DNA of 56,059 bases from Macrostomum lignano (GCA_002269645.1 NIVC01001490.1:1-56059); one strand, 5' to 3'; positions 119-55,772 are shown, counted from the first letter of the stretch. A program made the numbers and translations. The notes: a model not told the origin generated them from the sequence alone.

Positions 119-3100
119 AAATTGTGTACAAAACAAGGAATCTGCTACAACAGAAGTGTTCACATGTCTTGGGACGACTGCAATTACATGAACAGCCCGT
201 GTGAAAATGACACCAGCACCAGCACTGATCCTTTGATCCGATGCTATACCGGATACCACATGTGTCTAAGACAGACACAGTGCGATGAAGTGGAGGCAAA
301 GAGGTCGTGTCCCAACAACAAGATTATCATCACGTCCGTGTCGCCAACAAACTCCTGCTTCATTCCTCTGCGTCTGAATATTCGCTTTATCGTCGTGCAG
401 CAAGTGGGTCCTCCAGTGATGAGAATCGGATCCAACAGGCTCGACAACAGCCGCATCGGACAGGAAATTGCACTCGACAGGCTTCTCGATAACAACAGCT
501 GCGTGAGCGCAGACGCACTGGGAATGTCCAACTATGCCGGCTCCAATGCGAGTCTATCGTGGGTAAAGCTGAGGTTTCGCTACTTCAACAAGGACAACAA
601 GGTAGTCGCCGAGTGTCAGCCTACCTACGGATTTCTGCTTCCGCCGAAGTCGCGACCGCCACCAGCTAGATTCCCGACAGTCGTGGTAGAAAAGAACGGC
701 ACTGGATACATGTATGACTATGTCTACCCAAATAATATTTTAGGTCCAGTATTGAACCAGTCTACAGCATCTGCCCCGTGGTGCGACAGTCTCGGTCTGT
801 CCGAGTTTCCCGAATCCGCTCCCAACGACTACATTCGTCAGCTGTGTCGAGAGGCACCGAGGAAGGCTGCCTACTGCTACATCGAGGCGTCGTCGCTCTA
901 CACCGAATATTCGTTTCACGCCTACTCCTACTATGGCAGTGCTCCTGTCAGAAAGTTTGACCCAGGATACATATCGCTTTCTGTTGACAGCTCATACTTT
1001 AATGTGCAACTCAGGCAGCCGGGCAGTGTGAATTTGACATGCAGACTGTGGAACGGACTGCTGCCGGAGCAGGACACGCCTCCGACTGACGGAAACTACT
1101 TTGGCGACGAGATTCTCCGAATTCAGTATTCGTCCATCTGCTATCCTGGATATGTTCCCTGTTTGGCTTCAAAGACTTGTATTCCTTCTGATAATTTGTG
1201 CGAAGCGCCGACAATTTATCCTCGTACAACAATCGGTCCAGAAACTACAACTGATCAGATTACTACAGAGAAGCCTAAGGATTGCCGATACAAAGTGGGT
1301 ACAAGCAACTTTATGATTTATTCGAGTCGCTCCAACTTCATGAAACCCATTGCTGTCGTTTTGCACAGGTTTCCTGCCCACCCAGCGGTCAACTACTCTG
1401 CAAGGCTGCTTGTGTGCTGTCTCTTGTCGATCAGGGTACACGGTGCAACGCACAGGGCAAGGTAGGTATCAAGATGGCTATTTTTTAGCTTTTTAGCTTT
1501 TTTAGCTTATTTTTCTCGACAATACGAGCTACGCTCGTACATGCAATTTTAGTCAAGGAAAATGCTGTTCGTTTCAGAGATTCTGCCAATCCAAAGGTGT
1601 CTGTGAGAATGCTACAGCTGAGTCAAGCTTCTGTGCGTCTCTGCCTCAAAATTTCACGATATGCGAGGGCGCCAATGAGGTAAGCAACAGAATGCATTCT
1701 ACTGAATGCCTACTAAATTTTTGAGTTACATTCGTAGCAGGTATAAAAGCTCATTGTTTGTATTGCTAATGCGCGGTGACAAGATTGCTTCATTCAAAAT
1801 GCTCATCCTTAGACTGCCTGTCCTCACGCATTCGGTGCCTGCTTGGACTTCGCCAATTGCCGTCAATTGTGTCCTCGCTCTCATCGGCTTTTGCCAGCTG
1901 CTCAGCTCGTTTCTGGCTTCAAGGGCTTGTACAGGGATGCTCCGGACCCCGGCGTCTGTCGCACAGGTCACCTTCTTGGCGCTGCGTCTGCCGCACGCAT
2001 CAAAGTAATTTTTGTTAGCCCGGCATCCGGTACTGAGATGGAGTTGGATGGTCGCAAAATCAATGTCAGCGGAAGTCCAGAGCCGATCAGACCCGACAGT
2101 TGCTTCCAGCTTCTCGTCCACGGCGCTCAGAATGTACTCATCAATCTCACGTACTCGCTGCTACTTCCAGACGGATCGGAATGCGTTATGAGAAGCTTCG
2201 TGCTCCTACCTCAGAGAGCTCTACCTCCCAATGTGACACTGATTAAATCTAGTCTCAGCGTCATGGACACCTCTGTGCTGGATGAGTCTCTCTCTACAGT
2301 GCTGGTGTTGAGTCCAAACGGTTTCCCGAACAGCAGCGTGTGCGATCTAAGACTTGACAACGTAATTGATCTGCACTACGAGAGAAGTGTCTGCAACATG
2401 CGCTCAAGGATTGAGTCCTCGACTGTCGGTGGCGTGTTCTGCAAGTACATGGTGCAGCCGGTGTGGTAAGTTACTCCTGCTACTAACGTAGAGGCGGCAC
2501 ATTGCTGCCAGAACAATGTAAGAAATGTAAGAATAACGGAAGAGTTAATAAAATTTTCGGTTTTAATACCTAAAATAATAGAATAAATTGAGAATAATTA
2601 ATATATCATGCGAATTGCTGCTGCTTCCGTAATGACTGCAATACTCTCGTGCTTCAGTATATACATACATATAGTGTTAATGTAATTTGTGTAACTTCCA
2701 GGCCTGACATCTACGGAAACCTGACGTTCCGAAGTGGAGTCACGACAAGCGGTATCATCGAGTACATGAGAGGCTTTCTCGTTCCGAGTCCAAGCCAAGC
2801 CCACATCCGATTCGAACCAAATCGCAATGCCGCTACCAAGACCTTCGTTCTGATGTGCCAGGCTTGGAGTGGAATGCCGCCTCGCTTCGGCTACACCAGC
2901 TCTGGTTCCCTTGTTCCATCCGTCCTTCCTTCAACAGCCATGGGTGGGACAGTCAAAGTTACAATCAGCGTGCTGCACAAGGAGCAGCCTCCTGTTGTGA
3001 ATAAAGATTTCTTCTCTTTTGGTGTTCTCAAGGACAGGGAGAACGAGTACGTGAGTCAGAAATTACAGCGAGAGCGAGGCTTCATGCTGCAACGGCATGG

Positions 3101-6100
3101 AGAAAACTACGTCACTCAGATTCGGGTCGGCGACATGGTTTCACTGTTCTTTTGTGACGATAATACATTCGAGTTGGGCGCTCTCGTTCTACAAGGCCTC
3201 GGCGACGATGCAAGTGGTGTTCTGGAGTACCAGCTGCCGAACTCCATGTTCTGGCAGACTCTGAATGTATCCGCTGACAAGCCTGCGTTTGAGCAGTATC
3301 GCATGCGCTCGCGTTTTAAGGACTCAGCAAAAACTTCGGATGCCTTTTCAACCATCCAGTGTTTGGGAAGCATCTCATCTACATCTTCCTCCATGCTGCA
3401 GCTCTCTGACTTCCTAGCAGATGGCGTCAACGGTACGGGGCCTGTCACTGCGATGTTCCTCCCGGCCAACGCTACGATCCGATTTCGGCCTACGGCCCCG
3501 GCGTCCTGGTCCCGCAGTCGCGCCATCCTTGCTTTTACAGCCGCAGAGAAGCTGGACGCCCAACAACAAGTCTACATCAATCCAGTCGTGGTCAGTAGCG
3601 TAGTCAACAAAAGTGCAGCTGCTGGATGGGCAGTTGTCCGTCCAGTGACGGTTGGCTGCGACAATCAGCCGTGGTCAGGTCTCCAGACTGATGTCTGTAA
3701 TATCTGTGGTGGAAATGGTCGCTCATGCATCGACTGCAACGGTGATGCAAATGGCACAGCGATCTGGAACGACTGTGGCAACTGCGTTGGTGGAAGAACT
3801 GGCAAAGCCATGCGTTATGGAAAGGATTGCGCTGGTCGATGCAACGGATCCTTTGTCTCACCAATGCCTGGCCTGTGCTACAATTCCAGTCGATTTGCGA
3901 CTGCTGATGAGTACATTCGATCGGTGTGGTGCGATGGTAAAGTGAACAGCACTGCACGCATCAATAAGTGCGGCTTCTGCACCGAGGGAAGCACCGGAAG
4001 AGCGGCCAACTTCGGCGTAGGACCCTGCGGCTGCAGCAACGACACTTCCTGTATCATAGGCTGTGACGGTGTCGCTGAGCCATCGGTGTCGTCCCGAAAG
4101 ACTCTTGACAAATGCGGTCGTTGTCTGCTGCCCAGCGACCCGCAGAGAGATATCTGTGCTCGGATCCACTTCACGATTACCCGAAACGCTTGCGTGGGGT
4201 CATACGCTGATTATCAGCAAGTGACAATCAGCAGCAGCAGCATCAACCTCACAATCAGCTCAATCACTCTGCGCCTGCTGAAAGTGACCGATCGGGTAAG
4301 ACATCAATTCCATTTTTGCAATAATAAAACTAAAGGCTCTTTTACTTACACCGCTATCAAATTGCACGAATGTAAATTACACGACGATGTAAAACGCGGC
4401 GAAAAAAATAGTACAAGACGTTTATCCTGATAGTGACGAATAATGGCCTAATTTAGTGGCAACGCGCCTAAAGGTTTACTTACACTGATTGTAGATGTAG
4501 GTGAAAATAAGCAAAATAGACCATAACTCCTGAATTACTCAACATTTTAAAGCTTCAGTTTCTAAGTGTGCAATTTACGTTGATAAAATACAAACTAATT
4601 TCTCCGCCCTCACATTGACAGTCGCTCTACACGGAGCTTCAAGCAATATCCATCGATGTATCTTCTGGTCTGTTCCGCTTTTCTGTGCCCTCGGGTCTCG
4701 TTGCTCGCGAGTACGCTCTACAGGTGAAATACTTGACCGCTTCCGGTGCTACAGTCATCGAGGACGTTTCCGGTGGAAACTTGACTGTTTTTGGAGCTCC
4801 CAGCTTGTCCAGCTTGAGTGTCGGGAGCGGACTCACGCTAGAAAATCCCGTTTACTCTCTGCCAGTGAGCGGACAGGGATTCGTCAACACGCCCGATCTC
4901 GTCTGCCTTCTCTACTGCGACGATCTTAGCCGCCACACCCGATGCGACCCGCGCACTGGCTTTCTCACTGTGCCGGCCAGATTCGACAGCGCGACAAGCG
5001 TCACCTGCAATATCTCTGCGCTGGCCGAAGTCCGACAGCCGCTACAATGGAAGCTCAGCGTCATGAACTGCAAGCCGCAAACACTCAGCTACGATGCATA
5101 TGCGGTGTTCAAGTGAGTGGTTTGTTTTTATTGCTGCAAGTATGAATGCAATGATTTACACCAAGTGACACATCGATTACACCTCTTGCAATCACCGACC
5201 AGACACAACTCGCTGCCGTTCTCGATCCGCTCGAGTAAGGGTCCGGTGCTGCTCTCAGCAACTGATGACGCCATTGGCTACCACCTGCGTCTCGAGTTTG
5301 ACACAAACATCCAGCTGCGACAGACGGCGTGCTCGGCCATCTTTGATGCGTCGACTTTTGCGCTCATGGGTTCAGGCCCAAAGTGCTACGCGAGGGCAAA
5401 CGCTCTCATCGTGTGGAAAGGTCGTGGCGCAACAATCTGCTCTGGCTCGCGAATCAGCATCAATTCGAATATCATTTATGTGGGTGGCAGCGACATCAGT
5501 CTGGCCACCAGTTCCAGTGTCAGCACCGCTGTTGTGAATGCAAACGGTCGGAAGCCACCTGTCATCTTTTTGGCCGGAGTCCAATCAGATGCCAACCAGG
5601 TGGCCACCGTCGGACTCTGTGATTCGTTCACCCTGTATGCCATCATCAGTGGATCGATGGTGCAGCAGATCACTTGGGACATCCGGTGTGCTGCAGGCTC
5701 AACCTGTCAAGCAACTGAGCTGGCTGCATTCCAGTCGAAGTTTTCCACAGAAGTCACTTTCTACGCCGGAAAGGATGTTAGTGATCTCAAGCGCTTAAGT
5801 CAGAAGATATTACTCAAAAAATCATAAAGCTTACAGTCTCAAATCTTTGCTTTCTTCTTCAGATTCCGCCTGGCGAGTCATACAACATCACGGCTTCTGC
5901 CCAGAACGAATGCGGAACACAGTCAAATACGGCGAGCATCGTAGTAAAACGACTCGTTGAACGAACGCCATTCAGCATTAGTATCTACGGACCGCAAAAG
6001 TATGTGAAGCCCGATCTGTGGTACAGCGCTGTGCTTATTGTCCGACCTTCATTTTGCTATACCAAGGCTATCGACACTCTGAGTGTAAGTAACAGTACTC

Positions 6101-9100
6101 TGAGAACGCTTATAGAATAAATCATGCAGCAAAATGTGATAATAGCAGCAAAATTTGCATCAAAATCTTGATGAGCATATCCCTAAATTGTCTTTTTATC
6201 GAATATAAAGTACACCTGTTGTCTGCTATACAATAAAATACCTACACTGCCATCAACGTGATTCTCCACACTTTACTTTTGCAGTACAAGTGGAAGATCG
6301 TCGGTGGCACCAAAGCCATCAATGTGGACCAACAGGCGATCACAGGGAAATTCTTCCGACTGAGATCTGGAGTCCTGCAAGGAGGCCAGACCTACAACCT
6401 GAGTGTCTGCGCTTCCATGCCGACTTGGCCCAACGTGGCGTGCGGCTTTTTGCTTCTGGAGACGATCAGCCGCCCTCTGTTTCTCATGTTCGTCCGCGGA
6501 GGTCGCTCTGATCTCGGCGTCAGCGATGCACTGCAGGAATCCGTGTACATCATCGATCCGGACTACTCGACTGAGACGACATTATGCACCTTTTATCTGA
6601 CCAAATGGGCCAACGGTGAGGCAGTCTACATGCGCAACATGCACACTGGGACCATGCTGTCCTCATTCAGCTTCTTCGGTTCGGATGGAACTCAGACATC
6701 ATCGAACAGTATCCAAGTTCCTTGGCCGGACCCCAGCGTATACGAGCTACCCTCAGGCTTCATGAACCTTACCGTCAGTTGTCAGCGGGGTCAGCGAAGG
6801 TCCAGTCGTACAAAGCTTGTGCAGATTTTGCCTCGTCCACCTCCATCAGTTCGGATCTTGACCGAGCCGAGCAACAAACCAATCAATCCAAACGCTGCTG
6901 TCCCGGTGACAGCTTTAGTGATTGCCAGTGAGATAACCCAGATTCAATGGTCTGTGGATACTCAAGAGACTGGCTTTGGCTCGCTGTCGCTTCAGCAGTG
7001 CTCAGTAGGACCGCCGCTGGCCGATACATGCGTACCCAATCGTCGCTGCTTCATTACTTTGGTTCTCAAGCCAGGACGGAGCTGCAGATTTGCTGCCGGA
7101 GTCTCCTACCGACTGCTTTTGATCGCCAGCGCCAGTTCCGGGACCGCTCAGGCCCAGTTCGACTTCCGCGTGAATGCGCCACCAAGTGGTGGAGCACTGT
7201 CTGTGACTCCCAGCCAAGGAGCCGCTCTGGAGACCTCCTTCACGCTCACCATATGGCCGAATATCACTGACGATTCCGACGTGTCCTTCAGTTACAGCGC
7301 CATGTGCTGTCGCCAAGATTCATCAAGCCAGTGCGTCAGCGTAACTAGTGAACCAACGCCCGCTAGACTGCTCACCACTCGTCTACCTGGAGGAAACTGG
7401 ATCTGCAAAGCTTCAGCCATCGACTCTAACGGAGCAGGCTCCGATTGGTTCTCATTTACTACTGTAATTCAGGTGCAAGCGAAGCAGCTAACGCTTGCCA
7501 AGCTCGACGATTTACTAAACAACTTGAACAATATTTCAAACAGCTGTGAGCGTGATCAAATTATTTCCATTTTTACTTCAATTTCATCAAAATTAAATAT
7601 TAACTTGCATCGATTTCATATCTTGAATTATAGTTGACACTCCAGCACTATGCGGAATGATCCTGAGTGAGCCAGATACTGGCCTGTCAACTGAGGTAAA
7701 GAACAAGAAGCATGAGCTGGTGCAGGAACTGGCGATTCGGGATCTTCTGAATTTAGACACAAGGTATAAGTCGTGCTAAATAGTAATATACTTATAAACA
7801 GAAAACCAATCTGTCAATAGTGTGGAAAAACTCAAGGGCAGTATTATATTCAAACTTTATCGATAATTTTAGTGTGCCATCGGTTTCCTGTCTCAGGGCT
7901 GCAACAAGCTGTCAACTGTTTCGGAAAACGAAAGCCAACAGCCAGTACATAACAAACTTGGTACTGAGCACTCTTAAAAAGTGCCTTGATGCGTTTCACT
8001 CTCAGTCCTTTTCAACAACTTTGCCAAACAGCGCAAGAAGAAGGAGAAGGCGCAACACGTCGGGATCTCAGGGTGGAACAACAAGCAAAATAACTGCCAC
8101 TGAAGCGAAGTCCGTCCTCGACATCGCGTCCGGAGTCTATCACTCCACACTCGATTCGACGACAGCTGCTGATATCCAGGCTACAATTCTTAACACCGTT
8201 CCTGCCTTCTGCAACAGTCAAAATCCGAACTCGCTAGCTCAGGCGGCAGCGTCTACAATGGCTGTTGTACGCGTGTACAAGACGTCTTTCAACTCAGTCG
8301 GTTCAGCCAATCTGGAGATGGGATGCGACTCAGGAAGCACCGACTGTCTATCCAATTTCACAGTCCGTCAACAGGTTGCACTTGGAGACGATCTCGAGCA
8401 GCGCTACTATAACTGGTCATGTGGCCAGACTGACTGCTTCCAGGACGGTGCCTGCATCGGAACCATCCTGCTGGACAAGGATCTGCTCACTCCACAGGCC
8501 AAAGTGGCTTCTCCGACGATTTCTCCGCGACGCAGTCCTCTGGCCTACGTAGGAATATTTCACCCGAGCGACGGCGCGAACCAGAATGTTTCACGCCTCG
8601 GTGATGGCGTGACTATCACCACCAACATCAGTGGCTCTGTGAATCTTAGTAGCATCAGTCTCATCTGCCGCAGCTGGAGCGGAGCTGACTGGACCCCGGA
8701 TAACTGCACAACTCGCGCGCCATTCCAGACCGACGATGGCATCTGGCACGTAACGTGTGTGTGCCGTGACATATCTTCATTTATTGGCGTTTTTGAGGGA
8801 CCACCAGGCTTCCGACCGGAGACAACCATCGCTCCATCTACCACCGAAAGTGAGACTGGCCAAGCAAGGACGACGTTTGAAACAACATTTGAATCTCACT
8901 TAATGACTACAATTTTGAAGATGCATACCTCATCTGTGCCTCTTTCGAGTACCATCACTTCTACTCAGGCTCCCAGTAGTACGTCTGCGACACTTTCGAA
9001 AGCGTCGAGTTTGTCTAGCACTTCTCAGAGTACAATCATTTCTACTCAGGAACCCACTAGTACATCTGCGACACTTTCGAAAGCGCCGAGTTTGTCTAGC

Positions 9101-10180
9101 ACTTCTCAGAGTACCATCACTTCTACTCAGAAACTCACTAGTACGTCGGCGACACTCTCAGAGACGCAAACTTCAGCTGCAACGCTTTGGAACAGCATCA
9201 CGACAACTATATTACCCCGTGTAACGGCTCCGACACTCTCAGAGACGGACACTATAGCTGTGACACTCCAAATCAGGGTCACAGAGTCATTCTCTAACGT
9301 CGTTACAGACGAAAGCCGCCTTCAAGGCCACCTGACGAGTCAGCTTGCGCGTCAGCTAAGGCTCGCTGAGTCGCAACTAACCGACATGCAGTTTGCAAAT
9401 GGCAGCGTTCTTATCAGTTTTACCGTCAACAGTCAGTCTGGTGCCAACACTAGTGCTTCCTTCGCTGTTTATTTGCTGGTGCAGCTCATGAACAACCGCC
9501 AGCTCGTGCTACTTGGCCTGAGCAACAGCAGTCTGACGGTCTCCTGGGAGTACCTGCGGGTGCTGGACGTAAAAACAGCTATGCAGCCTACTGTAAGGAC
9601 TAGCAGCAACAACACCAACATTATTTCCATCGCTGTTGGTGCTTCAGTTGGTGCCCTTTGCCTAATTGGGACTTTTATAGTAGTCCTTCTGCTAATGCGA
9701 AGGAGCAACCGAAACTCTAAAGTCCCAGAAGAACATGAGAGCAACTTAAGGAATGATTTGAATACGGTGCGTGACCCGAGAGCAACGGAGACAAGTTGGC
9801 CGGTCGGTGTCATTCCAGTCAAGTTTGCACCACCCCGTTGGAAAACGGTAAGGAGCTCTTTCGGTGGGCTACATTTTTTGTTTGCGTGCGAAGCTGTACG
9901 TAGTAGGCACTTTATTGCACACACTGTTCTATAGGGTTTGGTCTTCATATTAAAAACTATGCGACTCAATCACAAATGAACGTGTACTCGCTCACAAGTA
10001 AAAAAGATTACTTAGCGATATTTGTTCTGAGAAATTGATTTTAGTATTTTTCATTACTTGCATTAACGCGCACCCGTGTCCTTCCTACGACAGGAAATGC
10101 TCAGGGAGACGGGTCCATCGCAAAGTCGAGAGTCGAGAGCTGAGCGAGTGAGGGAATGGAGCAACCTGAAATACTATTAA
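119..10180 (+). CDS. Copy A: large single-pass REJ/GAIN(GPS)/SEA receptor (polycystin-1/REJ-like ectodomain), multi-exon, 5' end outside window
   Basis: Phase-consistent GT-AG exon chain built by hand: 119-1294, 1369-1461, 1578-1679, 1813-2465, 2702-4295, 4622-5112, 5203-5776, 5863-6084, 6285-7545, 7634-7763, 7873-9847, 10094-10180 (8358 nt, 2786 codons; first acceptor and last exon uncertain). Nine of the ten internal exons match copy B in length to within 1 nt; the stalk-containing exon differs (1975 vs 1655 nt). REJ hallmark, GPS motif, SEA motif and one hydrophobic helix are visible in translation. Confidence 0.85.
3651..4160 (+). CDS. Tandem Cys-rich modules resembling the ADAMTS Cys-rich GCDG...DxCGVCGG motif (within copy A)
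   Basis: VGCDNQPWSGLQTDVCNICGGNGRSC, DCNGDANGTAIWNDCGNCVGG, WCDGKVNSTARINKCGFCTEG, GCDGVAEPSVSSRKTLDKCGRC. Confidence 0.6.
6285..7545 (+). CDS. REJ-module exon of copy A
   Basis: YKWKI...LRSGVLQGGQTYNLSV and VNAPPSGGALSVTPSQGAALETSFTL (from 7170), matching the NxPPxGGxxxVxPxxGxALxTxF signature of REJ domains in PKD1-family proteins. Confidence 0.85.
7873..9847 (+). CDS. GAIN/GPS - Ser/Thr stalk - SEA - transmembrane exon of copy A
   Basis: Polybasic RRRRRR at 8036-8053; GPS CRSWSGADWTPDNC...CVCRDISSF at 8666-8782; S/T-rich 8820-9240; SEA-like with FANGSVLISF (GSV 9401-9409); TM IISIAVGASVGALCLIGTFIVVLLLM at 9620-9697 followed by RR. Confidence 0.85.
8951..9172 (+). repeat. 81-bp coding tandem repeat (~2.7 copies) forming the mucin-like stalk of copy A
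   Basis: Units start at 8951, 9032 and 9113 (TITSTQAPSSTSATLSKASSLSSTSQS-like); absent from copy B. Confidence 0.85.
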
Positions 10181-11071: not shown

Positions 11072-11103
11072 GACGCGTTTCGCACTCCGTGGTGCATCTT
11101 CGG
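11072..11103 (-). ncRNA. Penelope-type minimal hammerhead ribozyme motif (probably degenerate)
   Basis: Minus strand CCGAAGA-T-GCAC[CACGGA]GTGC-GAAAC-GC-GTC; palindromic ACGCGT helix III; T-rich tract and AATAAA follow on the same strand; stem I reduced to about 1 bp. Confidence 0.5.
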
Positions 11104-11836: not shown

Positions 11837-12046
11837 TGGCGTCCCTGGCACTGGCGTCCCTGGCACTGGCGTCCCTGGCACTGGCGTCCCTGGCACTGGC
11901 GTCCCTGGCACTGGCGTCCCTGGCACTGGCGTCCCTGGCACTGGCGTCCCTGGCACTGGCGTCCCTGGCACTGGCGTCCCTGGCACTGGCGTCCCTGGCA
12001 CTGGCGTCCCTGGCACTGGCGTCCCTGGCACTGGCGTCCCTGGCAC
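11837..12046. repeat. 15-bp minisatellite (TGGCGTCCCTGGCAC) x14
   Basis: Perfect tandem units read directly; ends ~280 bp upstream of the ATG at 12323. Confidence 0.97.
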
Positions 12047-12183
12047 TGGTGCCCCTTCATGGTAGCTAGTCAGATAAAATGGCGCCAATTCAAATGAGAT
12101 AGCGAATTTTTGCACAACTCAATTCATTACGCGTCTAGTTCTGTCTCCGCATGAAACTGAAGCTACAGGGAATAAGTTGCGGA

Positions 12184-12266: not shown

Positions 12267-12322
12267 AGGGGCAATAAGACGCTCCATCAGGCATTCGTTC
12301 GATACGGTTGACTTGCAACACA

Positions 12323-23443: not shown

Positions 23444-23750
23444 CTAACCGGAAATCAGGTGCTCATCGTCCTCATCTGACAGGCCGCCCACCTGCTGGTA
23501 GCGTCCGTTGCTGCTGTCGCCGCCTCCGCCGCCGCTGCGGCACACGAAGTCGCAACCGTCGGCCAGACAGTCGCCGAATCTTCGCCAAACGGTGTAGTTC
23601 GGAATGGATTCGAGTCCGCGACGCTTGAATACGAATCGTTGAATTGCGGCGCCAATCAGCAGGTAGGAGATGAACAGGCTGAGCAAAACAATCAGCGCGA
23701 TAGCCGAGGCAGGCAGGCCGCCCTGCGGCTGCTCCAGGCTGCACAGGCGT
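23444..23750 (-). CDS. M6PR: M6PR exon 3 (TM helix and cytosolic tail)
   Basis: [25 protein letters not shown]; [11 protein letters not shown]; GCDFVCR; YQQV; terminal acidic DEHLI. Confidence 0.92.
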
Positions 23751-34900: not shown

Positions 34901-34989
34901 GCTTGGCAGAGCGCATGGCGCGAGATGCAGCAGGATTCAGCAGCTAAATCATACAGGCTACGGTAGAAGCGGAGAAAGAAATTCTGCGC

Positions 34990-36318: not shown

Positions 36319-37543
36319 AGTACCCAGAGTAAGTTGAGTAATTAAGTTGGGCTAGCCAAAAATCGCAAAAAAACGCACGCAAGCTGGCGAGGAGAGATAG
36401 GCTGAGGCGGGCACAACGCACGGGGCTAAAAAGGCCCCACAGACACCCACCCCCGCCTCGGGGGCGGCGCACCCACCCCCGTACCAAGCACCCCCAAAAC
36501 GGGCGACGACAAGCCCCCCCCTGGCCCCGCTAACAGCGATTCGCCAGCCAATCTACACTTAAGGGGCGCCATCATCGCCAGACACAATGGGGCTCCCAGC
36601 TGAGCAGGACCCCAAAAGCAAAAAATTAATTTTCTGTTTTTCATTGGCATATATTGTGGTTATATATTTGCATCGTACCCATTTTGATCGAAACGGGTAT
36701 ACTTTTTACTACCATTTGTGGCATATCCTTGTGCTAAAAGTAAAGGACGTACATACATGTACATGTATGTACGCAAGGACTACTAGACTAGGAACGAAGT
36801 GTTCCTAGTGGTCCAATATCACATTATCTAGACAGCGGGCCTGGGTTGTTTGAAGGTACACGCCAGAGGCGCGGCCGCGCCCACCATGCAGTCACCTATG
36901 CAGGTCAAGTACACCGCGGTAGAGACTCCCTCTCTAACGAGACGAGACTCCCGCGGTTTGTAACAGACGTAAGTTCTTGACCCGCAACTATGATAGAAAT
37001 GGCCGATTAGGGACTCTATGCGAGGCATGCAAAGGACAGTCTAGTCAGTTGCTGGAAACGAGGACTTTTGCATAGGAGGATCGAAAGGCACAGCTCAGAG
37101 CGAGGGGAAAGCTCGGCACCAGCAAAAGGGTGGCACAGGAAACGGGGAACGATAAAAACAGAGTGGAGAGAGGGGGAGGTAGCCGCTCAGGGCTTAAAAC
37201 GGCTCAATCTGTCCTCCAACTCTGAAGGTCATGTCCTCCAACTTTTTTGGCGCTGCCATAAGGCACAGCGCGCGGATAGCTTGCAGACCCGCCTTTGACA
37301 GGAAGAGATCCGTCTTATCTCGGGGTTCAGCAGGAGTGACGTGTCTGTGAGCTTATTAATGCGCGCTGTGTGGCTGATAGGTAGGCGTTGTGTCCATGCT
37401 TCGGCCATGTTAGCGTCGCCTAAATTGAGCTTTTGGCTCTCCCTGTCTGCTTGCGACGCCCATTGACACGTCGTTTGATTAAATCAAGCGAATGCGCTAT
37501 TGCGAAAAGTGCAGCCAGCTTTACGAGTAGTTGGCTGGTGGAA

Positions 37544-41673: not shown

Positions 41674-41694
41674 TCACTGCCACAGTTTTACCTT

Positions 41695-42006
41695 GGGGGT
41701 TGTAGCCTAGTGGTCAGAGCGTCGGACTCACGACTTGAAGGTCGGGGGTTCGATTCCCGACCCCTCTGGAACAATTTGTGTCCTTGAGCAAGACACTTAA
41801 CTCTGCATTGCTTCAGTTCACCCAGCTGTAAAATGGGTGCCAGCATTAGCTGGGGTAATTGAGGGTGTGTGTGGCGACCCCCCTAGTCCTTGGACTGAAC
41901 AGCCGTATGCAGCCTTCAGATGCGCCGCGCAATAGCTGCGGCTGAGCTGTCGGTTGCACATTTGCCCATTGGACAGGTGTAATCAATTATTATTATATTA
42001 TTATTA
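41695..42006 (+). mobile_element. tRNA-derived SINE with a CORE-like domain and (TTA)n tail
   Basis: A-box TAGCCTAGTGG at 41703-41713, B-box GGTTCGATTCC at 41747-41757; TGTGTCCTTGAGCAAGACACTTAAC...CTGTAAAATGGG resembles the MIR/CORE consensus; TSD TTTACCTT (41687-41694, 42007-42014). Confidence 0.85.
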
Positions 42007-45617: not shown

Positions 45618-48600
45618 TCAGTTCTCGACTCTGGACATTTCGATAGATCCGCCTCCCTGTGTATTGCCTGGTGTTGGAAAGAAAAGGTGACTGTAACTTA
45701 CAACTGGCAAATTTGACAATGAGTCCTGTTTGTGATAAAATTTATAAGCTCTTCTACTTTTGACAATAAGACCCGAATCAAAGCTACTTACTTCTAGCCA
45801 GCAGGCTGGCACGGGAGTTGCCGTTGCCGCGTTCACCGCCCACATCGACTCGGCTGCCGCTACGGCCTTGGCCGGCGCTGGCCCTGCTGCCGCTCCTAAC
45901 GTTGCTCTGCGATTCATCGGCGACTTTTGACGTTTGGGAGCTCTTCTTCATCAGCAGAACGATGACCACAATAGCCACAATTAGGCCAATACCTCCTAGC
46001 GAGGCTCCAACAGCTATGGCGACGATGTTGCTGCCATCGCCATCGACAATCACAGCATCTGTCTTCACGTCCAGCACCTGCAGATAGTCCCAGGACACGC
46101 TCAGGCTGCTGTTGCTCAGGTCTAGAAGAACTAACTGGCGGTTGTTCATGAGCTGCACAAGCAGTTGGGTAGCGGATGAGGCGCTAGTATTAGCACCAGA
46201 CTGGCTGTTGATGGTAAAACTGATCAAGACGCTACCACTCGTGAACTGCATGTTAGTAATTTGCGACTCGCTGAGCCTGAGCTGACGTGCGATCTGACTC
46301 GTTAGGTGACCTCGAAGACTGGTTTCACTTGTAACAACGCTGGAAAACGACTCTGTGACCTTGATCTGCAGCGTCACAGCTGAGGTCTGTGTCTCCGAGA
46401 GGGTCGGAGCAGTTACGCTGGGAGCCACGGTTGTTGACGTTGTTGCCGTTGTTGGGCCTGTGGTACTTTCAGAGGTAGATGGAGCGATGGTTGTCTCCGG
46501 TTGGAAGCCTGGTGGTCCCTCAAAAACGCCAATGAATGAGGATATGTCATGGCACACACACGTTACGTGCCAGATGCCATCGTCGGTCTGGAATGGCGCG
46601 CGAGTTGTGCAGTTATCCGGGGTCCAGTCGGCTCCGCTCCAGCTGCGGCAGATGAGACTGATGCTACTAAGATTCACAGAGCCACTGATGTTGGTGGTGA
46701 TAGTCACGCCATCACCAAGGCGTGAAACATTCTGGTTCGCGCCGTCGCTCGGGTGAAATATTCCTACGTAGGCCAGAGGACTGCGTCGCGGAGAAATCGT
46801 CGGAGAAGCCACTTTGGCCTGTGTAGTGAGCAGATCCTTGTCCAGCAGGATGGTTCCGATGCAGGCACCGTCCTGGAAGCAGTCAGTCTGGCCACATGAC
46901 CAGTTATAGTAGCGCTGCTCGAGATCGTCTCCAAGTGCAACCTGTTGACGGACTGTGAAATTGGATAGACAGTCGGTGCTTCCTGAGTCGCATCCCATCT
47001 CCAGATTGGCTGAACCGACTGAGTTGAAAGACGTCTTGTACACGCGTACAACAGCCATTGTAGACGCTGCCGCCTGAGCTAGCGAGTTCGGATTTTGACT
47101 GTTGCAGAAGGCAGGAACGGTGTTAAGAATTGTAGCCTGGATATCAGCAGCTGTCATCGAATCGAGTGTAGAATGATAGTTTCCAGATGCGATGTCGAGG
47201 ACGGACTTCACTTCAGTGGAGGTCATTTTGCTTGTTGTTCCACCCTGAGATCCCGACGTGTCGCGCCTTCGCCTTCGCTTACCAAGCACGCCATTTGAAA
47301 AAACTTGTGAGACTTGAGAATTGAAAGCATCTAGACATTTTTTCAGAGCATTCAGTACCAAGTTAGTTATATACTGGCTGTTGGCTTTCGTTTTCCGAAA
47401 CAGTTGACAGCTTGTTGCAGTCCTCAGACAGGAGACCGATGGCACACTGAAAGAATATATGTAGATATAGATATGCACTACGGAAACAATTAACGCTTTT
47501 GCGTGACACAAAAAGAATTCATTAAAAAGAAGTAGAAAAGTGGCGAATTCGTTATATTCTAGACAAATTCAAATTCCACAGAATTCTTACTTGATGTCTA
47601 GAGTCATAACGTCCCGAATCGCCAGTCCCTGCACCAGCTCATTCTTCTTGTTCTTTTCCTCAGTTGACAGGCCAGTATCCGGCTCATTCAGAATCATACC
47701 GCCCAAAGCTGGAGCGTCAACTATAATTTAGGATATGAAATCGATGCAAGTTATTATTTAATTTTGATGAAATTGAACTAAAAATGGAAATAATTTGATC
47801 ACGCTCACAGCTGTTTGAAATATTGTTCAAGTTGTTTAGTAAATCGTCGAGCTTGGCAAGCGTTAGCTGCTTCGCTTGCACCTGAATTACAGTAGTAAAT
47901 GAGAACCAATCGGAGCCTGCTCCGTTAGAGTCGATGGCTGAAGCTTTGCAGATCCAGTTTCCTCCAGGTAAACGAGTGGTGAGCAGTCTAGCGGGGGTTG
48001 GTTCACTAGTTACGCTGACGCACTGGCTTGATGAATCTTGGCGACAGCACATGGCGCTGTAACTGAAGGACACGTCCGAATCGTCAGTGATATTCGGCCA
48101 TATGGTGAGCGTGAAGGAGGTCTCCAGAGCGGCTCCTTGGCTGGGAGTCACAGACAGTGCTCCACCACTTGGTGGCGCATTCACGCGGAAGTCGAACTGG
48201 GCCTGAGCGGTCCCGGAACTGGCGCTGGCGATCAAAAGCAGTCGGTAGGAGACACCGGCAGCAAATCTGCAGCTCCGTCCTGGCTTGAGAACCAAAGTGA
48301 TGAAGCAGCGTCGATTGGGTACGCATGTATCGGCCAGCGGCGGTCCTACTGAGCACTGCTGAAGCGACAGCGAGCCAAAGCCAGTCTCTTGAGTATCCAC
48401 AGACCATTGAATCTGGGTTATCTCACTGGCAATCACTAAAGCTGTCACCGGGACAGCAGCGTTTGGATTGATTGGTTTGTTGCTCGGCTCGGTCAAGATA
48501 CGGACTGATGGAGGTGGACGAGGCAAAATCTGCACAAGCTTTGTACGACTGGACCTTCGCTGACCCCGCTGACAACTGACGGTAAGGTTCATGAAGCCTG

Positions 48601-51600
48601 AGGGTAGCTCGTATACGCTGGGGTCCGGCCAAGGAACTTGGATACTGTTCGATGATGTCTGAGTTCCATCCGAACCGAAGAAGCTGAATGAGGACAGCAT
48701 GGTCCCAGTGTGTACGTTGCGCATGTAGACTGCCTCACCGTTGGCCCATTTGGTCAGATAAAAGGTGCATAATGTCGTCTCAGTCGAGTAGTCCGGATCG
48801 ATGATGTACACGGATTCCTGCAGTGCATCGCTGACGCCGAGATCAGAGCGACCTCCGCGGACGAACATGAGAAACAGAGGGCGGCTGATCGTCTCCAGAA
48901 GCAAAAAGCCGCACGCCACGTTGGGCCAAGTCGGCATGGAAGCGCAGACACTCAGGTTGTAGGTCTGGCCTCCTTGCAGGACTCCAGATCTCAGTCGGAA
49001 GAATTTCCCTGTGATCGCCTGTTGGTCCACATTGATGGCTTTGGTGCCACCGACGATCTTCCACTTGTACTGCAAAAGTAAAGTGTGGAGAATCACGTTG
49101 ATGGCAGTGTAGGTATTTTATTGTATAGCAGACAACAGGTGTACTTTATATTCGATAAAAAGACAATTTAGGGATATGCTCATCAAGATTTTGATGCAAA
49201 TTTTGCTTCTATTATCACATTTTGCTGCATGATTTATTCTATAAGCGTTCTCAGAGTACTGTTACTTACACTCAGAGTGTCGATAGCCTTGGTATAGCAA
49301 AATGAAGGTCGGACAATAAGCACAGCGCTGTACCACAGATCGGGCTTCACATACTTTTGCGGTCCGTAGATACTAATGCTGAATGGCGTTCGTTCAACGA
49401 GTCGTTTTACTACGATGCTCGCCGTATTTGACTGTGTTCCGCATTCGTTCTGGGCAGAAGCCGTGATGTTGTATGACTCGCCAGGCGGAATCTGAAGAAG
49501 AAAGCAAATATTTGAGACTGTGAGCTTTATGATTTTTTGAGTAAAATCTTCTGACTTAAGCGCTTGAGATCACTAACATCCTTTCCGGCGTAGAAAGTGA
49601 CTTCTGTGGAAAACTTCGACTGGAATGCAGCCAGCTCAGTTGCTTGACAGGTTGAGCCTGCAGCACACCGGATGTCCCAAGTGATCTGCTGCACCATCGA
49701 TCCACTGATGATGGCATACAGGGTGAACGAGTCACAGAGTCCGACGGTGGCCACCTGGTTGGCATCTGATTGGACTCCGGCCAAAAAGATGACAGGTGGC
49801 TTTCGATCGTTTGCATTCACAACAGCGGTGCTGAAACTGGAACTGGTGGCCAGGCTGATGTCGCTGCCACCCACATAAATGATATTCGAATTGATGCTGA
49901 TTCGCGAGCCAGAGCAGATTGTTGCGCCACGACCTTTCCACACGATGAGAGCGTTTGCCCTCGCGTAGCACTTTGGGCCTGAACCCATCAGCGCAAAAGT
50001 CGACGCATCAAAAATGGCCGAGCACGCCGTCTGTCGCAGCTGGATGTTTGTGTCAAACTCGAGATGCAGGTGGTAGCCAATGGCGTCATCAGTTGCTGAG
50101 AGCAGCACCGGACCCTTACTCGAGCGGATCGAGAACGGCAGAGAGTTGTGCCTGGTCGGCGATTGCAAGAGTTGTAACCGATGTGTCACTTGGTGTAAAT
50201 CATTGCATTCATACTTGCAGCAATAAAAACAAACCACTCACTTGAACACCGCATATGCATCGTAGCTGATTGTTTGCAGCTTGCAGTTCATGACGCTGAG
50301 CTTCCATTGTAGCGGCTGTCGGACTTCGGCCAGCGCAGAGATATTGCAGGTGACGCTTGTCGCGCTGTCGAATCTGGCCGGCACAGTGAGAAAGCCAGTG
50401 CGCGGGTCGCATCGGGTGTGGCGGCTAAGATCGTCGCAGTAGAGAAGGCAGACGAGATCGGGCGTGTTGACGAATCCCTGTCCGCTCACTGGCAGAGAGT
50501 AAACGGGATTTTCTAGCGTGAGTCCGGTCCCGACACTCATGCTGGACAAGTTGGGAGGTCCAAAAACAGTCAAGTTTCCACCGGAAACGTCCTCGATGAC
50601 TGTAGCACCGGAAGCGGTCAAGTATTTCACCTGTAGAGCGTACTCGCGAGCAACGAGACCCGAGGGCACAGAAAAGCGGAACAGACCAGAAGATACATCG
50701 ATGGATATTGCTTGAAGCTCCGTGTAGAGCGACTGTCAATGTGAGGGCGGAGAAATTAGTTTGTATTTTATCAACGTAAATTGCACACTTAGAAACTGAA
50801 GCTTTAAAATGTTGAGTAATTCTGGAGTTTTGGTCTATTTTGCTTATATTCACCTACATCTACAATCAGTGTTAGTAAACCTTTAGGCGCGTTGCCACTA
50901 AATTAGGCCATTATTCGTCACTATTAGGATAAACGTCTTGTACTTTTTTTTCGCCGCGTTTTACATCGTCGTGTAATTTACATTCGTGCAATTTGATAGC
51001 GGTGTACGTAAACGAGCCTTTAGTTATATTATTGCAACAATGGAATTTACGTCTTACCCGATCGGTCACTTTCAGCAGGCGCAGAAGATTTTTGATGATT
51101 GTGAGGTTGATGCTGCTGCTGCTGATTGTCACTTGCTGATAAGCAGCGTATGACCCCACGCAAGCGTTTCGGGTAATCGTGAAGTGGATCCGAGCACAGA
51201 TGTCTCTCTGCGGGTCGCTGGGCTGCAGACAACGACCGCATTTGTCAAGAGTCTTTCGGAGACGACCGATGGCTCAGCGACACCGTCACAGCCTGTGATG
51301 CAGGAAGTGTCGTTGCTGCAGCCGCAGGGTCCTACGCCGAAGTTGGCCGCTCTTCCGGTGCTTCCCTCGGTGCAGAAGCCGCACTTATTGATGCGCGCAG
51401 TGCTGTTCACTTTACCATCGCACCACACCGATCGAATGTACTCATCAGCAGTCGCAAATCGACTGGAATTGTAGCACAGGCCAGGCATTGGCGAGACAAA
51501 GGATCCGTTGCATCGACCAGCGCAGTCCTTTCCATAACGCATGGCTTTGCCAGTTCTTCCACCAACGCAGTTGCCACAGTCGTTCCAGATCGCTGTGCCA

Positions 51601-54600
51601 TTTGCATCACCGTTGCAGTCGATGCATGAGCGACCATTTCCACCACAGATATTACAGACATCAGTCTGGAGACCTGACCACGGCTGATTGTCGCAGCCAA
51701 CCGTCACTGGACGGACAACTGCCCATCCAGCAGCTGCACTTTTGTTGACCACGCTACTGACAACGAGTGGATTGATGTAGACTTGTTGTTGGGCGACCAG
51801 CTTCTCTGCGGCTGTAAAAGCAAGGATGGCGCGACTGTGGGACCAGGACGCCGGGGCCGTAGGCCGAAATCGGATCGTAGCGTTGGCCGGGAGGAACATC
51901 GCAGTGACAGGCCCCGTACCGTTGACGCCATCTGCTAGGAAGTCAGAGAGCTGCAGCATGGAGGAAGATGTAGATGAGATGCTTCCCAAACACTGGATGG
52001 TTGAAAAGGCATCCGAAGTTTTTGCCGAGTCCTTAAAACGCGAGAGCATGCGATATTGCTCAAACGCAGGCTTGTCAGCGGATACATTCAGAGTCTGCCA
52101 GGACATGGAGTTCGGCAGCTGGTACTCCAGAACACCACTTGCATCGTCGCCGAGGCCTTGTAGAACGAGAGCGCCCAACTCGAATGTATTATCGTCACAA
52201 AAGAACAGTGAAACCATGTCGCCGACCCGAATCTGAGTGACGTAGTTTTCTCCATGCCGTTGCAGCATGAAGCCTCGCTCTCGCTGTAATTTCTGACTCA
52301 CGTACTCGTTCTCCCTGTCCTTGAGAACACCAAAAGAGAAGAAATCTTTATTCACAACAGGAGGCTGCTCCTTGTGCAGCACGCTGATTGTGACTTTGAC
52401 TATCCCACCCATGGCTGTAAAAGGAAGGACGGATGGAACAAGGGAACCAGAGCTGGTGTAGCTGAAGCGAGGTGGCAGTCCACTCCAAGCCACGCACATC
52501 AGAACGAAGGTCTTGGTAGCGGCATTGCGATTTGGTTCGAATCGGATGTGGGCTTGGCTTGGACTCGGAACGAGAAAGCCTCTCATGTACTCGATGATAC
52601 CGCTTGTCGTGACTCCACTTCGGAACGTCAGGTTTCCGTAGATGTCAGGCCTGGAAGTTACACAAATTACGTTTACACTATATTTATGTATATACTGAAG
52701 TATAATACTGGAACCACAAACATTCACATGAGATATTTTTCATTCTCCTTTTATTCCATTATTTCAAGTATTAAATCGAAAAATCTATTTATGTTTCGGT
52801 TCTTTTTACATTTCTTACAAAGTTATGGCAGCGATGTGCCGTCTCTACGTTAGTAGCAGGAGTAACTTACCACACCGGCTCCACCATGTACTTGCAGAAC
52901 ACGCCACCGACAGTCGAGGACTCAACCCTTGAGCGCATGTTGCAGAGACTTCGCTCAGAGTGCAGATCAATTACGTTGTCAAGTCTTAGATCGCACACGC
53001 TGCTGCTCGGGAACCGGTTTGGACTCAACACCAGCACTGTGGAGAGAGACACATCCAGCACAGAGGTGTCCATGACGCTGAGGCTGGATTTAATCAGTGT
53101 CACATTGGGAGGTAGAGCTCTCGGATGTAGGAGCACAAAGCTTCTCATAACGCATTCCGATCCGTCCGGAAGTAGCAGCGAGTACGTGAGATTGATGAGT
53201 ACATTTTGAGCGCCGTGTAAGAGAAGCTGGAAGCAACTGTCGGGTCTGATCGGCTCTGGACTTCCGCTGACGTTGATTTTGCGACCATCCAGCTCCATCT
53301 CGACACCGGAATCTGGGCTGACAAAAAGCACTCTGATGCGTGCGGCAGACGCAGCGCCAAGAAGGTGACCTGTGCGACAGACACCGAGGTCCGGAGCATC
53401 CCTGTACAAGCCCTTGAAGCCAGAAACGAGCTGAGCAGCTGGCAACAGCCGATGAAAGCGAGGACACATTTGGCGGCAGTTGGCGAAGTCTAAGCAGGCA
53501 CCGAATGCGTGAGGACAGGCAGTCTAAGGGTGAACAGTTTGAATGAAACAACCTCGTCACCGCTAATTAGACATAGTACGTACGAAAAATGAGCATTTAT
53601 AGCTGCTACGAATTTTGAAATTTAGTTTATAGTAAGCATTCAGTCGAATACTGTCGCTCACCTCGTTGGCGCCCTCGCATATCGTGAAATTGTGAGGCAG
53701 AGATGCACAGAAGCTTGGCTCAGCTGTAGCATTCTCGCAAACACCGTTGGATGGGCAGAATCGCTGAAACGAGCAGCATTTTGCTATATTTTTTGTTAAC
53801 AAGAGAATCCTAAGAATCAAGAATGCAGCACTTGGCGGCTAGACTCGCATTTGGCAATTGAAGCAGACAACAAATCAAAAGGGTATAGCGCGTATATAGA
53901 GCTCGTTATACTTATTATCAATTTTTAAAAAGGCGAGGTTGACACAGGCTTTAGCGGGGGGTTATTAATGTGCATGAATTGCTATGTACTCGTACGTTAA
54001 CCAATCAGAATGGAAGGGGTGAGAAAAGGTGGCGTGAGGCGCGGAGGGGGGTGCAATAGACAAATCATGAGTGTGAGTAATTGTACAGATACAGACGTAC
54101 ATTGAAATAAAAAATTCTTTACTCTTCAAACCATTTTCTGCAACACCAATATTATTATATATTTTGCAGAGAATGCTAAAAATAGTCAGTTTGAGACTTA
54201 CCTTGCCTTCTGCGTTGCACCGTGCACCCTGCTCGACAAGAGACAACACACAAGCAGCCTTGCAAAGCAGTAGACCGCTGGGTGGGCAGGAAACCTGCGC
54301 AAAAAGATAGCAATTGGTTTCATGTAGTTGGAACAACGATAAAAAATCAGTCGCTTATACTCACTTTGAATCGGCAATCCCTAGGCTTATCTGTAGTCAG
54401 TTGATCGGTTGTAGTTTTTTGATCGATTGTAGTAAGAGGATCAGCTGTAGTACGTTTATCGGTTACTGCGGATGTCTGTGACTCAAGGGTAGACACGGAT
54501 GGCGGGACTGTTGAGTCCATACTCCACGTTGTGCTTGGACAGGATCCAACAGGGACGCACCTCTTGACGGCCTCACAGTAAGTCTCAGCCTAAAAAAAAG

Positions 54601-55772
54601 AATTTTAACGATTACAGAGCAACAGAGAACTCAAATGCACAAAAGAGTGACTGACGAAAACTTACAGAGCTGCAGTTCATCGACGCTTCGCACAAATCCC
54701 CAGAACGAATACAAGTCTTTAATGCCAAACAGGGAACATATCCAGGATAGCAGCTGAATGAATACTCAATTCGAAGAATCTCGTCTCCGAAGTAGTTTTC
54801 GTCAGTCGGAGGCGCGTCCTGCTCCGGCAGCAGTCCGTTCCACAGTCTGCATGTTAAATTGACACTGCCCGGCTGTCTGAGTTGCACATAAAAGTATGAG
54901 CTCTCAACCGATAGCAGTAGGTATCCTGAGCTGAACTTTCTGACAGAAGCGCCGCCATAGTAGGTGTAGGCGTAGAGCGAATATTCGGTGTAGAGCGACG
55001 ACGCCTCAATGTAGCAGTAGGCAGCCTTGCTCGGCGCCTCTCGACACAGCTGACGAACGTGGTCGTTGGGTGCGGAGTCGGGAAACTCGAACCGACCGAG
55101 ACTGTCGCACCAAGGCGCAGATGCTGTCGACTGGTTCAATACTGGGCCTAAAATATTCCTTGGGTAGACATTGTCATACATGTTTGTAGTGCTGTTCTTT
55201 TTCAGCACGACTGTCGGGAATCCAGCTGGTGGCGGTCGCGACTTCGGCGGAAGCAGGAATCCGTAGGTAGGCTGACACTCCGCGACTACTTGGCTGTCAT
55301 TGTTAAAGTAGCGAACCCTCAGCTTTACCCACGATAGACTCGCATTGGAGCCGGCGTAGTTGGACATTCCCAGTGCGTCTGCGCTCACGCAGCTGTTGTT
55401 ATCGAGAAGCCTGTTGAGTGTAATTTCCTGTCCGATGCGGCTGTTGTCGAGCTTGTTGGATCCGAGTCTCATCACGGAAGGACCCACTTGCTGCACAACG
55501 GTGAAACGAACATTCAGACCCGAAGGAATGAAGCAGGAGTTTGTAGGCGACACGGACGTGATAATGGTCTTGTTGTTGGGACACGACCTCTTCGCCACCA
55601 CTTCATCGCACTGTGTCTGTTCGATACACATATTGTAACCGGAATAGCATCGGATCAGAGGCTCAGTGCTGGTGCTGGTGGCATTGTCACACGGGCTGCT
55701 CATGTAACTGCAGGTGTCCCAGGGCATGTAAACAGTTCTGTTGTAGCAGATTCCTTGCTTTGGGCAGAAATT
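45618..55772 (-). CDS. Copy B: inverted paralogue of the REJ/GAIN(GPS)/SEA single-pass receptor; apparent 1-nt frameshift at ~51263; 5' end outside window
   Basis: Exons 55772-54666, 54589-54365, 54294-54202, 53763-53662, 53523-52871, 52650-51058 (1593 nt vs 1594 in A), 50732-50242, 50151-49578, 49491-49270, 49069-47809, 47720-47591, 47446-45792, 45667-45618; same domain order as copy A. Confidence 0.85.
45792..47446 (-). CDS. GAIN/GPS - short stalk - SEA - TM exon of copy B
   Basis: KRRRRR at 47280-47263; GPS ...CVCHDISSF at 46650-46534; FTSGSVLISF (46236-46228); TM IVAIAVGASLGGIGLIVAIVVIVLLM at 46026-45949. Confidence 0.85.
47809..49069 (-). CDS. REJ-module exon of copy B
   Basis: 1261 nt, as in A; translation differs from A at only a few residues (e.g. 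NMHTG vs NVHTG). Confidence 0.85.

Follow-up and report, generated by a model that had tools for sequence, protein, structure and literature searches.

The Macrostomum lignano contig NIVC01001490.1 (56,059 bp; GCA_002269645.1, assembly Mlig_3_7), the whole of which is the window analyzed here, carries two long inverted arms, and each arm holds one copy of a multi-exon gene encoding a large REJ-domain receptor. The two copies, which we term gene A and gene B, are convergent (tail to tail), and each is cut at its 5' end by a contig edge. Divergence between the arms rises and falls in sharp steps along their length. As judged from the sequence comparisons below, this mosaic is very probably the outcome of repeated gene conversion between old inverted paralogs; the best explanation of the locus is an old tail-to-tail duplication whose copies exchanged sequence several times without crossing over.

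Mlig_3_7 was built with Canu 1.4 (errorRate setting 0.04) from PacBio reads of the inbred DV1 line and polished using Pilon with Illumina and RNA-seq reads (PMC5730564). M. lignano is a neopolyploid with three subgenomes at approximately 2% single-nucleotide polymorphism divergence, and copy-number errors have been acknowledged for this assembly (PMC10733133). Each end of the contig lies within one of the inverted arms, in an intron of the gene copy located there, and the inverted repeat and both genes probably continue past the contig edges. No gene model for either receptor copy was present in the collections searched, and the annotation listed for 13.4-40.6 kb names only a cation-dependent mannose-6-phosphate receptor (M6PR) gene located between the arms. 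A second contig, NIVC01001794.1 (237 kb), contains a collinear copy of the spacer with 94-99.6% identity, compared only over window positions ~16-41 kb, and this copy is most likely the homeolog. The comparison covered the M6PR gene and 10 kb to either side, equivalent to window positions 16.0 to ~41 kb, all within the spacer.

Comparison by BLAST paired A 24-9752 with the reverse complement of B 55874-45894 as five collinear pieces. The arms were then globally aligned and identity was computed for each 100-column bin, followed by maximum-likelihood (binomial) segmentation of the alignment. Bin identity was 84-97% across A 132-2568, and then 93-100%, mostly 98-100%, across A 2669-7568. It fell to 86-88% over A 7569-7768 and 39% over 7769-7845, recovered to 71-83% up to 8124, and was again 96-100% across A 8225-8824. 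Past A ~8824 there is an approximately 300-nt insertion in A and identity is 63-79% to ~9724, with arm homology fading beyond A 9750. Segmentation resolved this profile into five blocks (Table 1), of which blocks 2 and 4 are the candidate conversion tracts 1 and 2. The original prediction had placed near-identical tracts at ~2.9-7.6 kb and ~8.17-8.83 kb, and both binned identity and segmentation bear out these limits, with tract 1 starting somewhat earlier, at ~2.68 kb. It had also described the N-terminal exons, the flanks of a furin site, the stalk, a SEA module, the transmembrane (TM) helix, and the tail as diverged. The diverged blocks (12.2%, 21.3%, and 26.9%) agree with this, and a run of six arginines, the stalk, the TM helix, and the tail are readable; the SEA assignment, in turn, is a motif-level call only.

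The near-identity of the tracts is clustered well beyond what scattered mismatches would give. Tract 1 has 84 scattered differences in 4,930 columns (98.3% identity) and includes perfect runs of 492, 300, 289, 264, 248, 224, and 209 bp, while over the whole arm comparison the longest identical runs are 492, 331, and 300 bp. When the 682 mismatches were placed uniformly in 2,000 permutations, the longest run averaged 93 bp and had a maximum of 183 bp. Introns follow the same steps, with identities of 95.5-99.5% inside the tracts versus 55-82% outside. Intron 10 (7764-7872), previously claimed to be unalignable, has GT-AG boundaries in both copies but only 55% identity with 41 gap columns, and is essentially that. 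A patch of approximately 300 bp at 92-94% identity lies inside tract 1 (B 51058-51330 / A 4040-4340) and holds two clusters of multi-nucleotide differences, at A 4088-4094, the source of a frameshift in B, and at A 4258-4267. This patch could be an unconverted remnant, a template-switch event, or a local polishing error.

Silent sites and introns carry the argument for conversion. Synonymous divergence (dS) was 0.19 for exons 1-4, 0.029 for exons 5-9, 0.43 for exon 10 and the start of exon 11, 0.026 for 8161-8830, 0.93 for the SEA-like module, and 1.16 for the TM helix and tail, the last being the most diverged part also by nonsynonymous divergence (dN 0.52). The heterogeneity of dS across blocks was highly significant (chi-square 415, p = 1e-88). 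Among the five introns within tract 1, 22 of 789 aligned sites were mismatched (2.8%), compared to 160 of 641 (25%) for the five introns outside the tracts (Fisher p = 3e-38). Since silent sites and introns show identity steps that are just as sharp, constraint cannot explain the mosaic. Inside the tracts, the intron divergence of 2.8% matches the dS of 2.9%, as neutral decay following homogenization predicts. The earlier claim of conversion tracts between the inverted arms is thus well founded, with dS of 0.03 in the tracts versus 0.19-1.16 in the flanks, the corresponding intron contrast, and the run-length permutation all in agreement. The idea that diversifying selection keeps the island at 7615-8160 diverged was considered separately and rejected, as dN/dS there is 0.26 (dS 0.43).

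The gene models were obtained by keeping GT-AG junctions at homologous positions in both copies while retaining an open frame. Exon 12 of A, with donor GTAAGG at 9848 preceding its intron, was found via the tail of UniRef A0A1I8FVC6, to which it is 100% identical over 28 aa. The same entry runs approximately 190 aa upstream of the window, indicating that 5' ends are missing from the window. Every exon of B except exon 5 is open in one frame; as assembled, exon 5 of B contains a frameshift leading to a premature TGA at 51131-51129. The stalk of B is approximately 100 aa shorter than that of A, and the tail of B also differs. Either copy B was disabled only recently, with conversion from A having kept most of it open, or the assembly is in error here. 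In the diverged blocks dN/dS is 0.17-0.45, indicating that both copies were functional, and under purifying selection as gauged by these ratios, for most of their history.

The graded dS values indicate at least three ages of sequence: an old duplication, exchange of intermediate age toward the 5' side, and recent exchange in the two tracts. The SEA-like, TM, and tail end retains near-original divergence (dS ~1), the 5' exons were homogenized at an intermediate time (dS 0.19), and the two tracts of 4.9 and 0.68 kb were homogenized recently (dS ~0.03). Divergence in the recent tracts is similar to that between the M. lignano subgenomes (~2%, PMC10733133). In each event, a double-strand break in one copy would be repaired from the inverted paralog on the same or the sister chromatid, and resolution as a non-crossover would leave a conversion tract behind. 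The tract ends probably mark places where heteroduplex fails to form or is rejected, and their locations would fit such a limit: the indel-rich intron 4, the unalignable intron 10 with its 21%-diverged surroundings, and the stalk repeat of unequal length.

A third sequence was available in UniRef A0A1I8FVC6 (2,438 aa), an M. lignano gene prediction from the earlier ML2 assembly, which we scored at the residues that distinguish A from B. Over the SEA-like module, TM helix, and tail, this protein is A-type at 81 of 83 diagnostic sites and B-type at none, and in exon 1 it is A-type at 54 sites and B-type at 9. Between A 2116 and 4056, however, it is B-type at 15 of 20 sites, becoming A-like again from 4089. 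This A-B-A pattern points to non-crossover exchange, of which it would be a signature. The left switch lies at ~2.1 kb, versus a tract start of 2683 in NIVC01001490.1, and the differing left ends suggest independent conversion events in different copies.

Several considerations weigh against our preference for repeated conversion or limit how far it can be taken. ML2 and Mlig_3_7 were built on the same PacBio reads, such that A0A1I8FVC6 is not an independent sample; it also has 59 private differences as well as frame errors, and its mosaic could be partly an assembly chimera, giving it limited weight. The sampling consists of the assembled sequence of one inbred line. A comparison of just two nucleotide sequences, unrooted by any outgroup, fixes neither the direction of conversion nor how many events took place. 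Fine differences inside the tracts, including the frameshift in B, could be consensus or polishing errors given three subgenomes that are ~2% diverged. A signature of GC-biased conversion was sought in the introns and was not found, with 34.2% GC inside the tracts and 34.6% outside.

The same assembly history raises the prospect that the tracts themselves are artefacts, produced by consensus mixing of reads from A, B, and homeologs, or by Pilon acting on multi-mapped short reads. The Canu and Pilon procedure described above, the three closely similar subgenomes, the acknowledged copy-number errors, the start and end of the contig inside the arms, and odd multi-nucleotide differences in B (51258-51265 and the site matching A 4258-4267) are all in keeping with such an origin. 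Reads would not map across a divergence of 12-27%, however, and polishing could therefore not have lowered it to 1-2% along 4.9 kb; polishing with RNA-seq also offers no explanation for near-identical introns. Moreover, the tracts retain their 84 scattered differences rather than being collapsed to identity, and the contig runs on through them into copy-specific sequence on both sides. We therefore regard an artefactual origin of the tracts as improbable. A palindrome due to a missed adapter was ruled out by the 36-kb unique, gene-bearing spacer, which is collinear with NIVC01001794.1. The proposal that purifying selection alone has kept the central exons near-identical, with no recombination between the copies, could appeal to the conserved REJ domain encoded in the central tract, but it is refuted by the tract dS of 0.03 and by the low divergence of the introns there relative to those outside, and we assign it practically no probability.

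The original prediction went further in proposing that a crossover between the arms would flip the spacer and swap receptor halves between the two genes, in a manner resembling a shufflon. The topology of such a flip is valid. An in silico crossover placed within the 492-bp run of identity (A 6400 / B 48954) generated an in-frame A5'-B3' gene of 2,666 aa with splice sites intact, and at least eight perfect-identity runs longer than 200 bp are present to serve as crossover substrate. Judged by its length (4.9 kb) and identity (98.3%), tract 1 is an adequate substrate for homologous recombination. Occasional germline inversion by crossover in tract 1, whereby a 40-50-kb segment would toggle among populations or lineages and swap the 3' modules, from the arginine-run flank and stalk through the SEA-like module, TM helix, and tail, between the two 5' ectodomains, would coexist with gene conversion rather than replace it. 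Precedent exists in human Y palindrome P6, for which 3 inversions versus 56 conversions illustrate that converting inverted repeats also invert, if less often (PMC3723533), and there is ample documentation that inversions recur between inverted duplications in the human genome (bioRxiv 10.1101/2021.12.20.472354). No flip was seen in the data, however: neither a second orientation nor a chimera with a single switch appeared among one inbred line and one other sequence, and that sequence, A0A1I8FVC6, links an A-type 5' part to an A-type 3' part. The contig is also unbroken through tract 1 into copy-specific sequence on both sides, which is not what we would expect of an assembler were both linkages common in the reads. 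In addition, given the frameshift in B as assembled, the reciprocal B5'-A3' product would fall short of a complete receptor, leaving one inversion product non-functional. On balance we consider occasional germline inversion possible though doubtful. Its stronger form, recurrent toggling in populations or between subgenomes with both 5' ectodomains joined to either 3' cassette, both chimeras expressed, and the cassettes kept unconverted by selection, would be a distinctly less probable state of affairs.

Programmed or somatic flipping driven by a recombinase, which would give combinatorial receptor isoforms within an individual as in a shufflon, has in its favor only the inverted geometry and a tyrosine-recombinase open reading frame (ORF) in the spacer (33907-34410). 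That ORF belongs to a retroelement that the homeologous contig lacks, and so is not part of the design of the locus. There is one invertible segment only, and short conserved recombination sites are lacking at the tract ends, which fall in introns, mid-exon, and at a repeat of variable length; the inverted repeats themselves comprise entire genes whose divergence is graded. Apart from the gene arms, a scan of the window for inverted repeats detected a single, unrelated pair of 65 nt located in the spacer. According to PMC11850598, eukaryotes are not known to have any natural system of multiplexed inversion. The resemblance to a shufflon that had been suggested does not hold at this level, and we consider recombinase-driven flipping extremely unlikely. 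Repeated non-crossover conversion between the inverted paralogs thus remains the reading we prefer.

The receptor encoded by these genes exceeds 2,800 aa and has at least 12 exons. REJ is the sole domain supported by a curated profile. Pfam searches at E <=10 with every long exon and with 1,206 aa of the spliced protein revealed REJ only, with no GPS, PLAT, PKD_channel, or SEA match. An exhaustive HMMER search of 1.84 billion representatives with the REJ exon revealed 125 relatives, and those checked were large REJ proteins, three of which carry REJ at E = 1e-38 to 1e-75. A word-indexed search of 5.8 billion proteins gave no match for the REJ exon or the last exon, but was uninformative, as it missed A0A1I8FVC6, an entry of the same collection that is 93% identical to one of these queries and covers much of the other. 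UniRef names A0A1I8FVC6 a "ZP domain-containing protein"; Pfam does not support this name, finding no family in that entry and only REJ in spliced A. The N-terminal part (window 77-1294 together with A0A1I8FVC6 residues 1-190) consists of a repeated module of approximately 300 aa whose copies are ~60% identical and are spaced by short Cys-rich segments, with the pattern ...APWCDSLG.SEFP...LCREAP.KAAYCYIEA...YSYYG..., to which no Pfam family matches.

Downstream of REJ is a Cys- and Trp-containing motif at 8666-8782, whose pattern has a single occurrence in the protein and none among 20,000 shuffles. We take its layout to be that of the GPS motif that follows the REJ domain of polycystin-1, with D-I-S in place of the H-L-T/S triad. 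A search of PDB sequences with the GAIN-like region returned nothing meaningful. The module between the stalk and the TM helix has a G-S-V-L-I motif that, with its location, is consistent with a SEA domain. An AlphaFold2 (AF2) model of this module has the order beta-alpha-beta-beta-alpha-beta with G-S at the beta2-beta3 turn, although the mean predicted local distance difference test score (pLDDT) was just 53. Foldseek matched the module to generic ferredoxin-like folds only, at E 0.018 or worse, and the module had no match in Pfam (PF01390) or in a PDB sequence search. A structure model of the whole last exon was unusable (pLDDT 32.5).

Table 1. Features of the inverted arms, the two receptor genes, and the intervening spacer in contig NIVC01001490.1 (positions counted from the first nucleotide of the window)
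Feature	Position	Strand	Remarks
Arm A	24-9752	+	Carries gene A, reaches left contig edge; collinear BLAST pieces versus reverse complement of 45894-55874
Arm B	45894-55874	-	Carries gene B, ends within 185 nt of right contig edge; BLAST and global alignment
Block 1	A 39-2682	+	12.2% divergence (segmentation)
Block 2 (conversion tract 1)	A 2683-7614 / B 52669-47740	+ / -	4.93 kb, 1.7% divergence; end of intron 4 to intron 9, five introns inside
Block 3 (diverged island)	A 7615-8160 / B 47739-47156	+ / -	21.3% divergence; exon 10, intron 10, start of exon 11 with arginine run
Block 4 (conversion tract 2)	A 8161-8840 / B 47155-46476	+ / -	680 bp, 1.0% divergence; within exon 11, includes GPS-like motif
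Block 5	A 8841-9750	+	26.9% divergence (segmentation)
Gene A	77-10180	+	5' end missing (contig edge); stop TAA 10178-10180
Gene A exons 1-4	~119-1294, 1369-1461, 1578-1679, 1813-2465	+	GT-AG model
Gene A exons 5-8	2702-4295, 4622-5112, 5203-5776, 5863-6084	+	GT-AG model
Gene A exons 9-12	6285-7545, 7634-7763, 7873-9847, 10094-10180	+	GT-AG model; exon 12 via UniRef A0A1I8FVC6 tail
Gene B	45784-55772	-	5' truncated; putative 3' end; A junctions projected, each with AG...GT in B
Gene B exons homologous to A 1-4	55772-~54681 plus extra mini-exon, 54294-54202, 53763-53662, 53523-52871	-	Projection
Gene B exons homologous to A 5-8	52650-51058, 50732-50242, 50151-49578, 49491-49270	-	Projection
Gene B exons homologous to A 9-11	49069-47809, 47720-47591, 47446-45784	-	Projection
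B-specific exon 1 insertion	54441-54680	-	Extra GT-AG intron and Cys-containing coding segment; absent from A (site A 1210)
Net -1 indel cluster, exon 5 of B	51258-51265 (A 4088-4094)	-	Exon 5 is 1593 nt in B versus 1594 in A
REJ domain, exon 9 of A	6285-7545	+	Pfam PF02010, 70.9 bits versus cut-off 25, E = 1.1e-19; 2.1e-19 on spliced protein
Run of six arginines	8036-8053	+	Read from sequence; K plus five R in B
GPS-like motif	8666-8782	+	C-x2-W-x4-W-x4-C-x16-C-x-C-x3-S-x-F; D-I-S at cleavage position
Serine/threonine (S/T)-rich stalk of A	8813-9220	+	81-nt repeat, 2.6 copies (8947-9156), missing in B
SEA-like module of A (~120 aa)	9221-9586 / B 46416-46051	+ / 	Motif F-A-N-G-S-V-L-I-S-F; A/B dS 0.93
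TM helix of A	9620-9697	+	Single; cytoplasmic tail 9698-9847 plus exon 12
Unique spacer	9753-45893		36.1 kb; Sushi-repeat gene, M6PR gene, minisatellite arrays, retroelement
M6PR gene	23444-30174	-	BOX15_Mlig013714g1, 98% identity (query was two spliced spacer exons)
Tyrosine-recombinase retroelement, DIRS/PAT/Ngaro-like	33394-36558	- (ORFs)	3.2 kb; ORFs 33907-34410, 34732-35517, 35539-36318; SAP-domain and Phage_integrase-like ORFs

The spacer contains several further features. A chain of long ORFs at 15567-19753 (+) encodes Sushi/CCP repeats (Pfam PF00084, best E = 3e-9), where NCBI has no annotated gene. The large intron of the M6PR gene contains G-rich minisatellite arrays of 29-31 bp (25895-29771) with a GC skew of ~+0.5, some of which read as long spurious ORFs in several frames. 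Two other arrays are likewise open in several frames, one of 14 perfectly identical 15-bp copies at 11837-12049 and one of 27.6 copies of 30 bp with 94% matches at 21491-22319. In the retroelement, the ORF at 33907-34410 matched Phage_integrase at E = 6e-6, just under the Pfam cut-off, and the element has split direct repeats of 205 nt (33584-33783 and 36359-36561). Its absence from NIVC01001794.1 indicates a copy-specific insertion. An Rfam tRNA match at 41696-41765 (+) scored 34.6 bits, above the gathering score, with no ARAGORN call, and could represent a degenerate tRNA gene or else a repeat of tRNA origin.

Inverted paralog pairs homogenized introns included, and forming near-perfect inverted repeats, have been described in Caenorhabditis elegans (Zhao et al. 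2007, PMC1803023). The M. lignano pair shares with these the convergent or divergent arrangement of paralogs, an invertebrate autosomal genome, introns within the arms, and an active homogenizing process. It differs in having uneven arms (five blocks, 1-27%), a 36-kb spacer with unrelated genes, and a much larger gene. Sex-chromosome palindromes likewise have inverted arms around a unique spacer, and multi-kilobase conversion tracts accompanied by rare inversions have been found for human Y palindrome P6 (PMC3723533); there, too, a crossover would invert the spacer, an outcome far less frequent than conversion. Palindromes of the Y and X are, however, 10-1,000 times larger, with >99.9% identity along the whole arm, and their genes lie entirely within the arms, such that inversion makes no chimeric genes. 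In M. lignano, exchange has affected the arms in patches, and the genes themselves would be split by a crossover.

Inversions between a gene and its inverted copy are known from F8 int22h and IDS/IDSP1, where the crossover rearranges the gene. Inversions by nonallelic homologous recombination between inverted segmental duplications in humans (bioRxiv 10.1101/2021.12.20.472354) employ the same mechanism as the flip proposed here. In the human cases, however, both orientations are observed, unlike in M. lignano, and the disease outcome is gene disruption rather than a functional chimera. Bacterial shufflons (Rci/sfx, PMC5430464, PMC11852207) are alike in that inverting a gene segment exchanges the 3' or C-terminal portion of a protein acting at the surface or in specificity. 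They differ in having a dedicated site-specific recombinase, short defined sites, several segments, and high-frequency switching within a clone, none of which belongs to the M. lignano locus. Comparable inverted gene segments are found in the invertible hsdS loci of phase-variable type I restriction systems.

The REJ-module protein family includes polycystin-1 (PKD1), PKDREJ, and sea-urchin suREJ. As in these proteins, REJ in the M. lignano receptor is followed within approximately 300 residues by a GPS-type motif with four Cys and two Trp, just outside the membrane-proximal region. Unlike polycystin-1-like proteins, the receptor has one TM helix rather than 11 plus PLAT, D-I-S for H-L-T/S, and a mucin-like stalk and SEA-like module between the GPS-like motif and the membrane. 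With a single TM helix and no Pfam match to GPS, PLAT, or PKD_channel, identification as a polycystin-1-like (PKD1/PKDREJ) receptor was rejected. None of the curated libraries searched describes a protein that combines REJ, a GPS-like motif, an S/T-rich stalk, a SEA-like module, and a single TM helix.

The phenomenon observed here is an ordinary one, conversion being common among inverted duplicates; what is new is the gene and the species. The idea of a flip matters only if both orientations are found. The locus also advises caution in annotating and assembling such loci in Mlig_3_7, as both gene copies are cut by contig ends and lack an NCBI gene model in the parts of the annotation examined. 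Provided that the structure is real, the locus offers a clean, sharply bounded example of inverted paralogs undergoing interlocus gene conversion in a flatworm that is neopolyploid, with at least three conversion ages readable from one sequence pair and different tract ends in a third copy. It would then be a useful case of concerted evolution meeting a recent whole-genome duplication.

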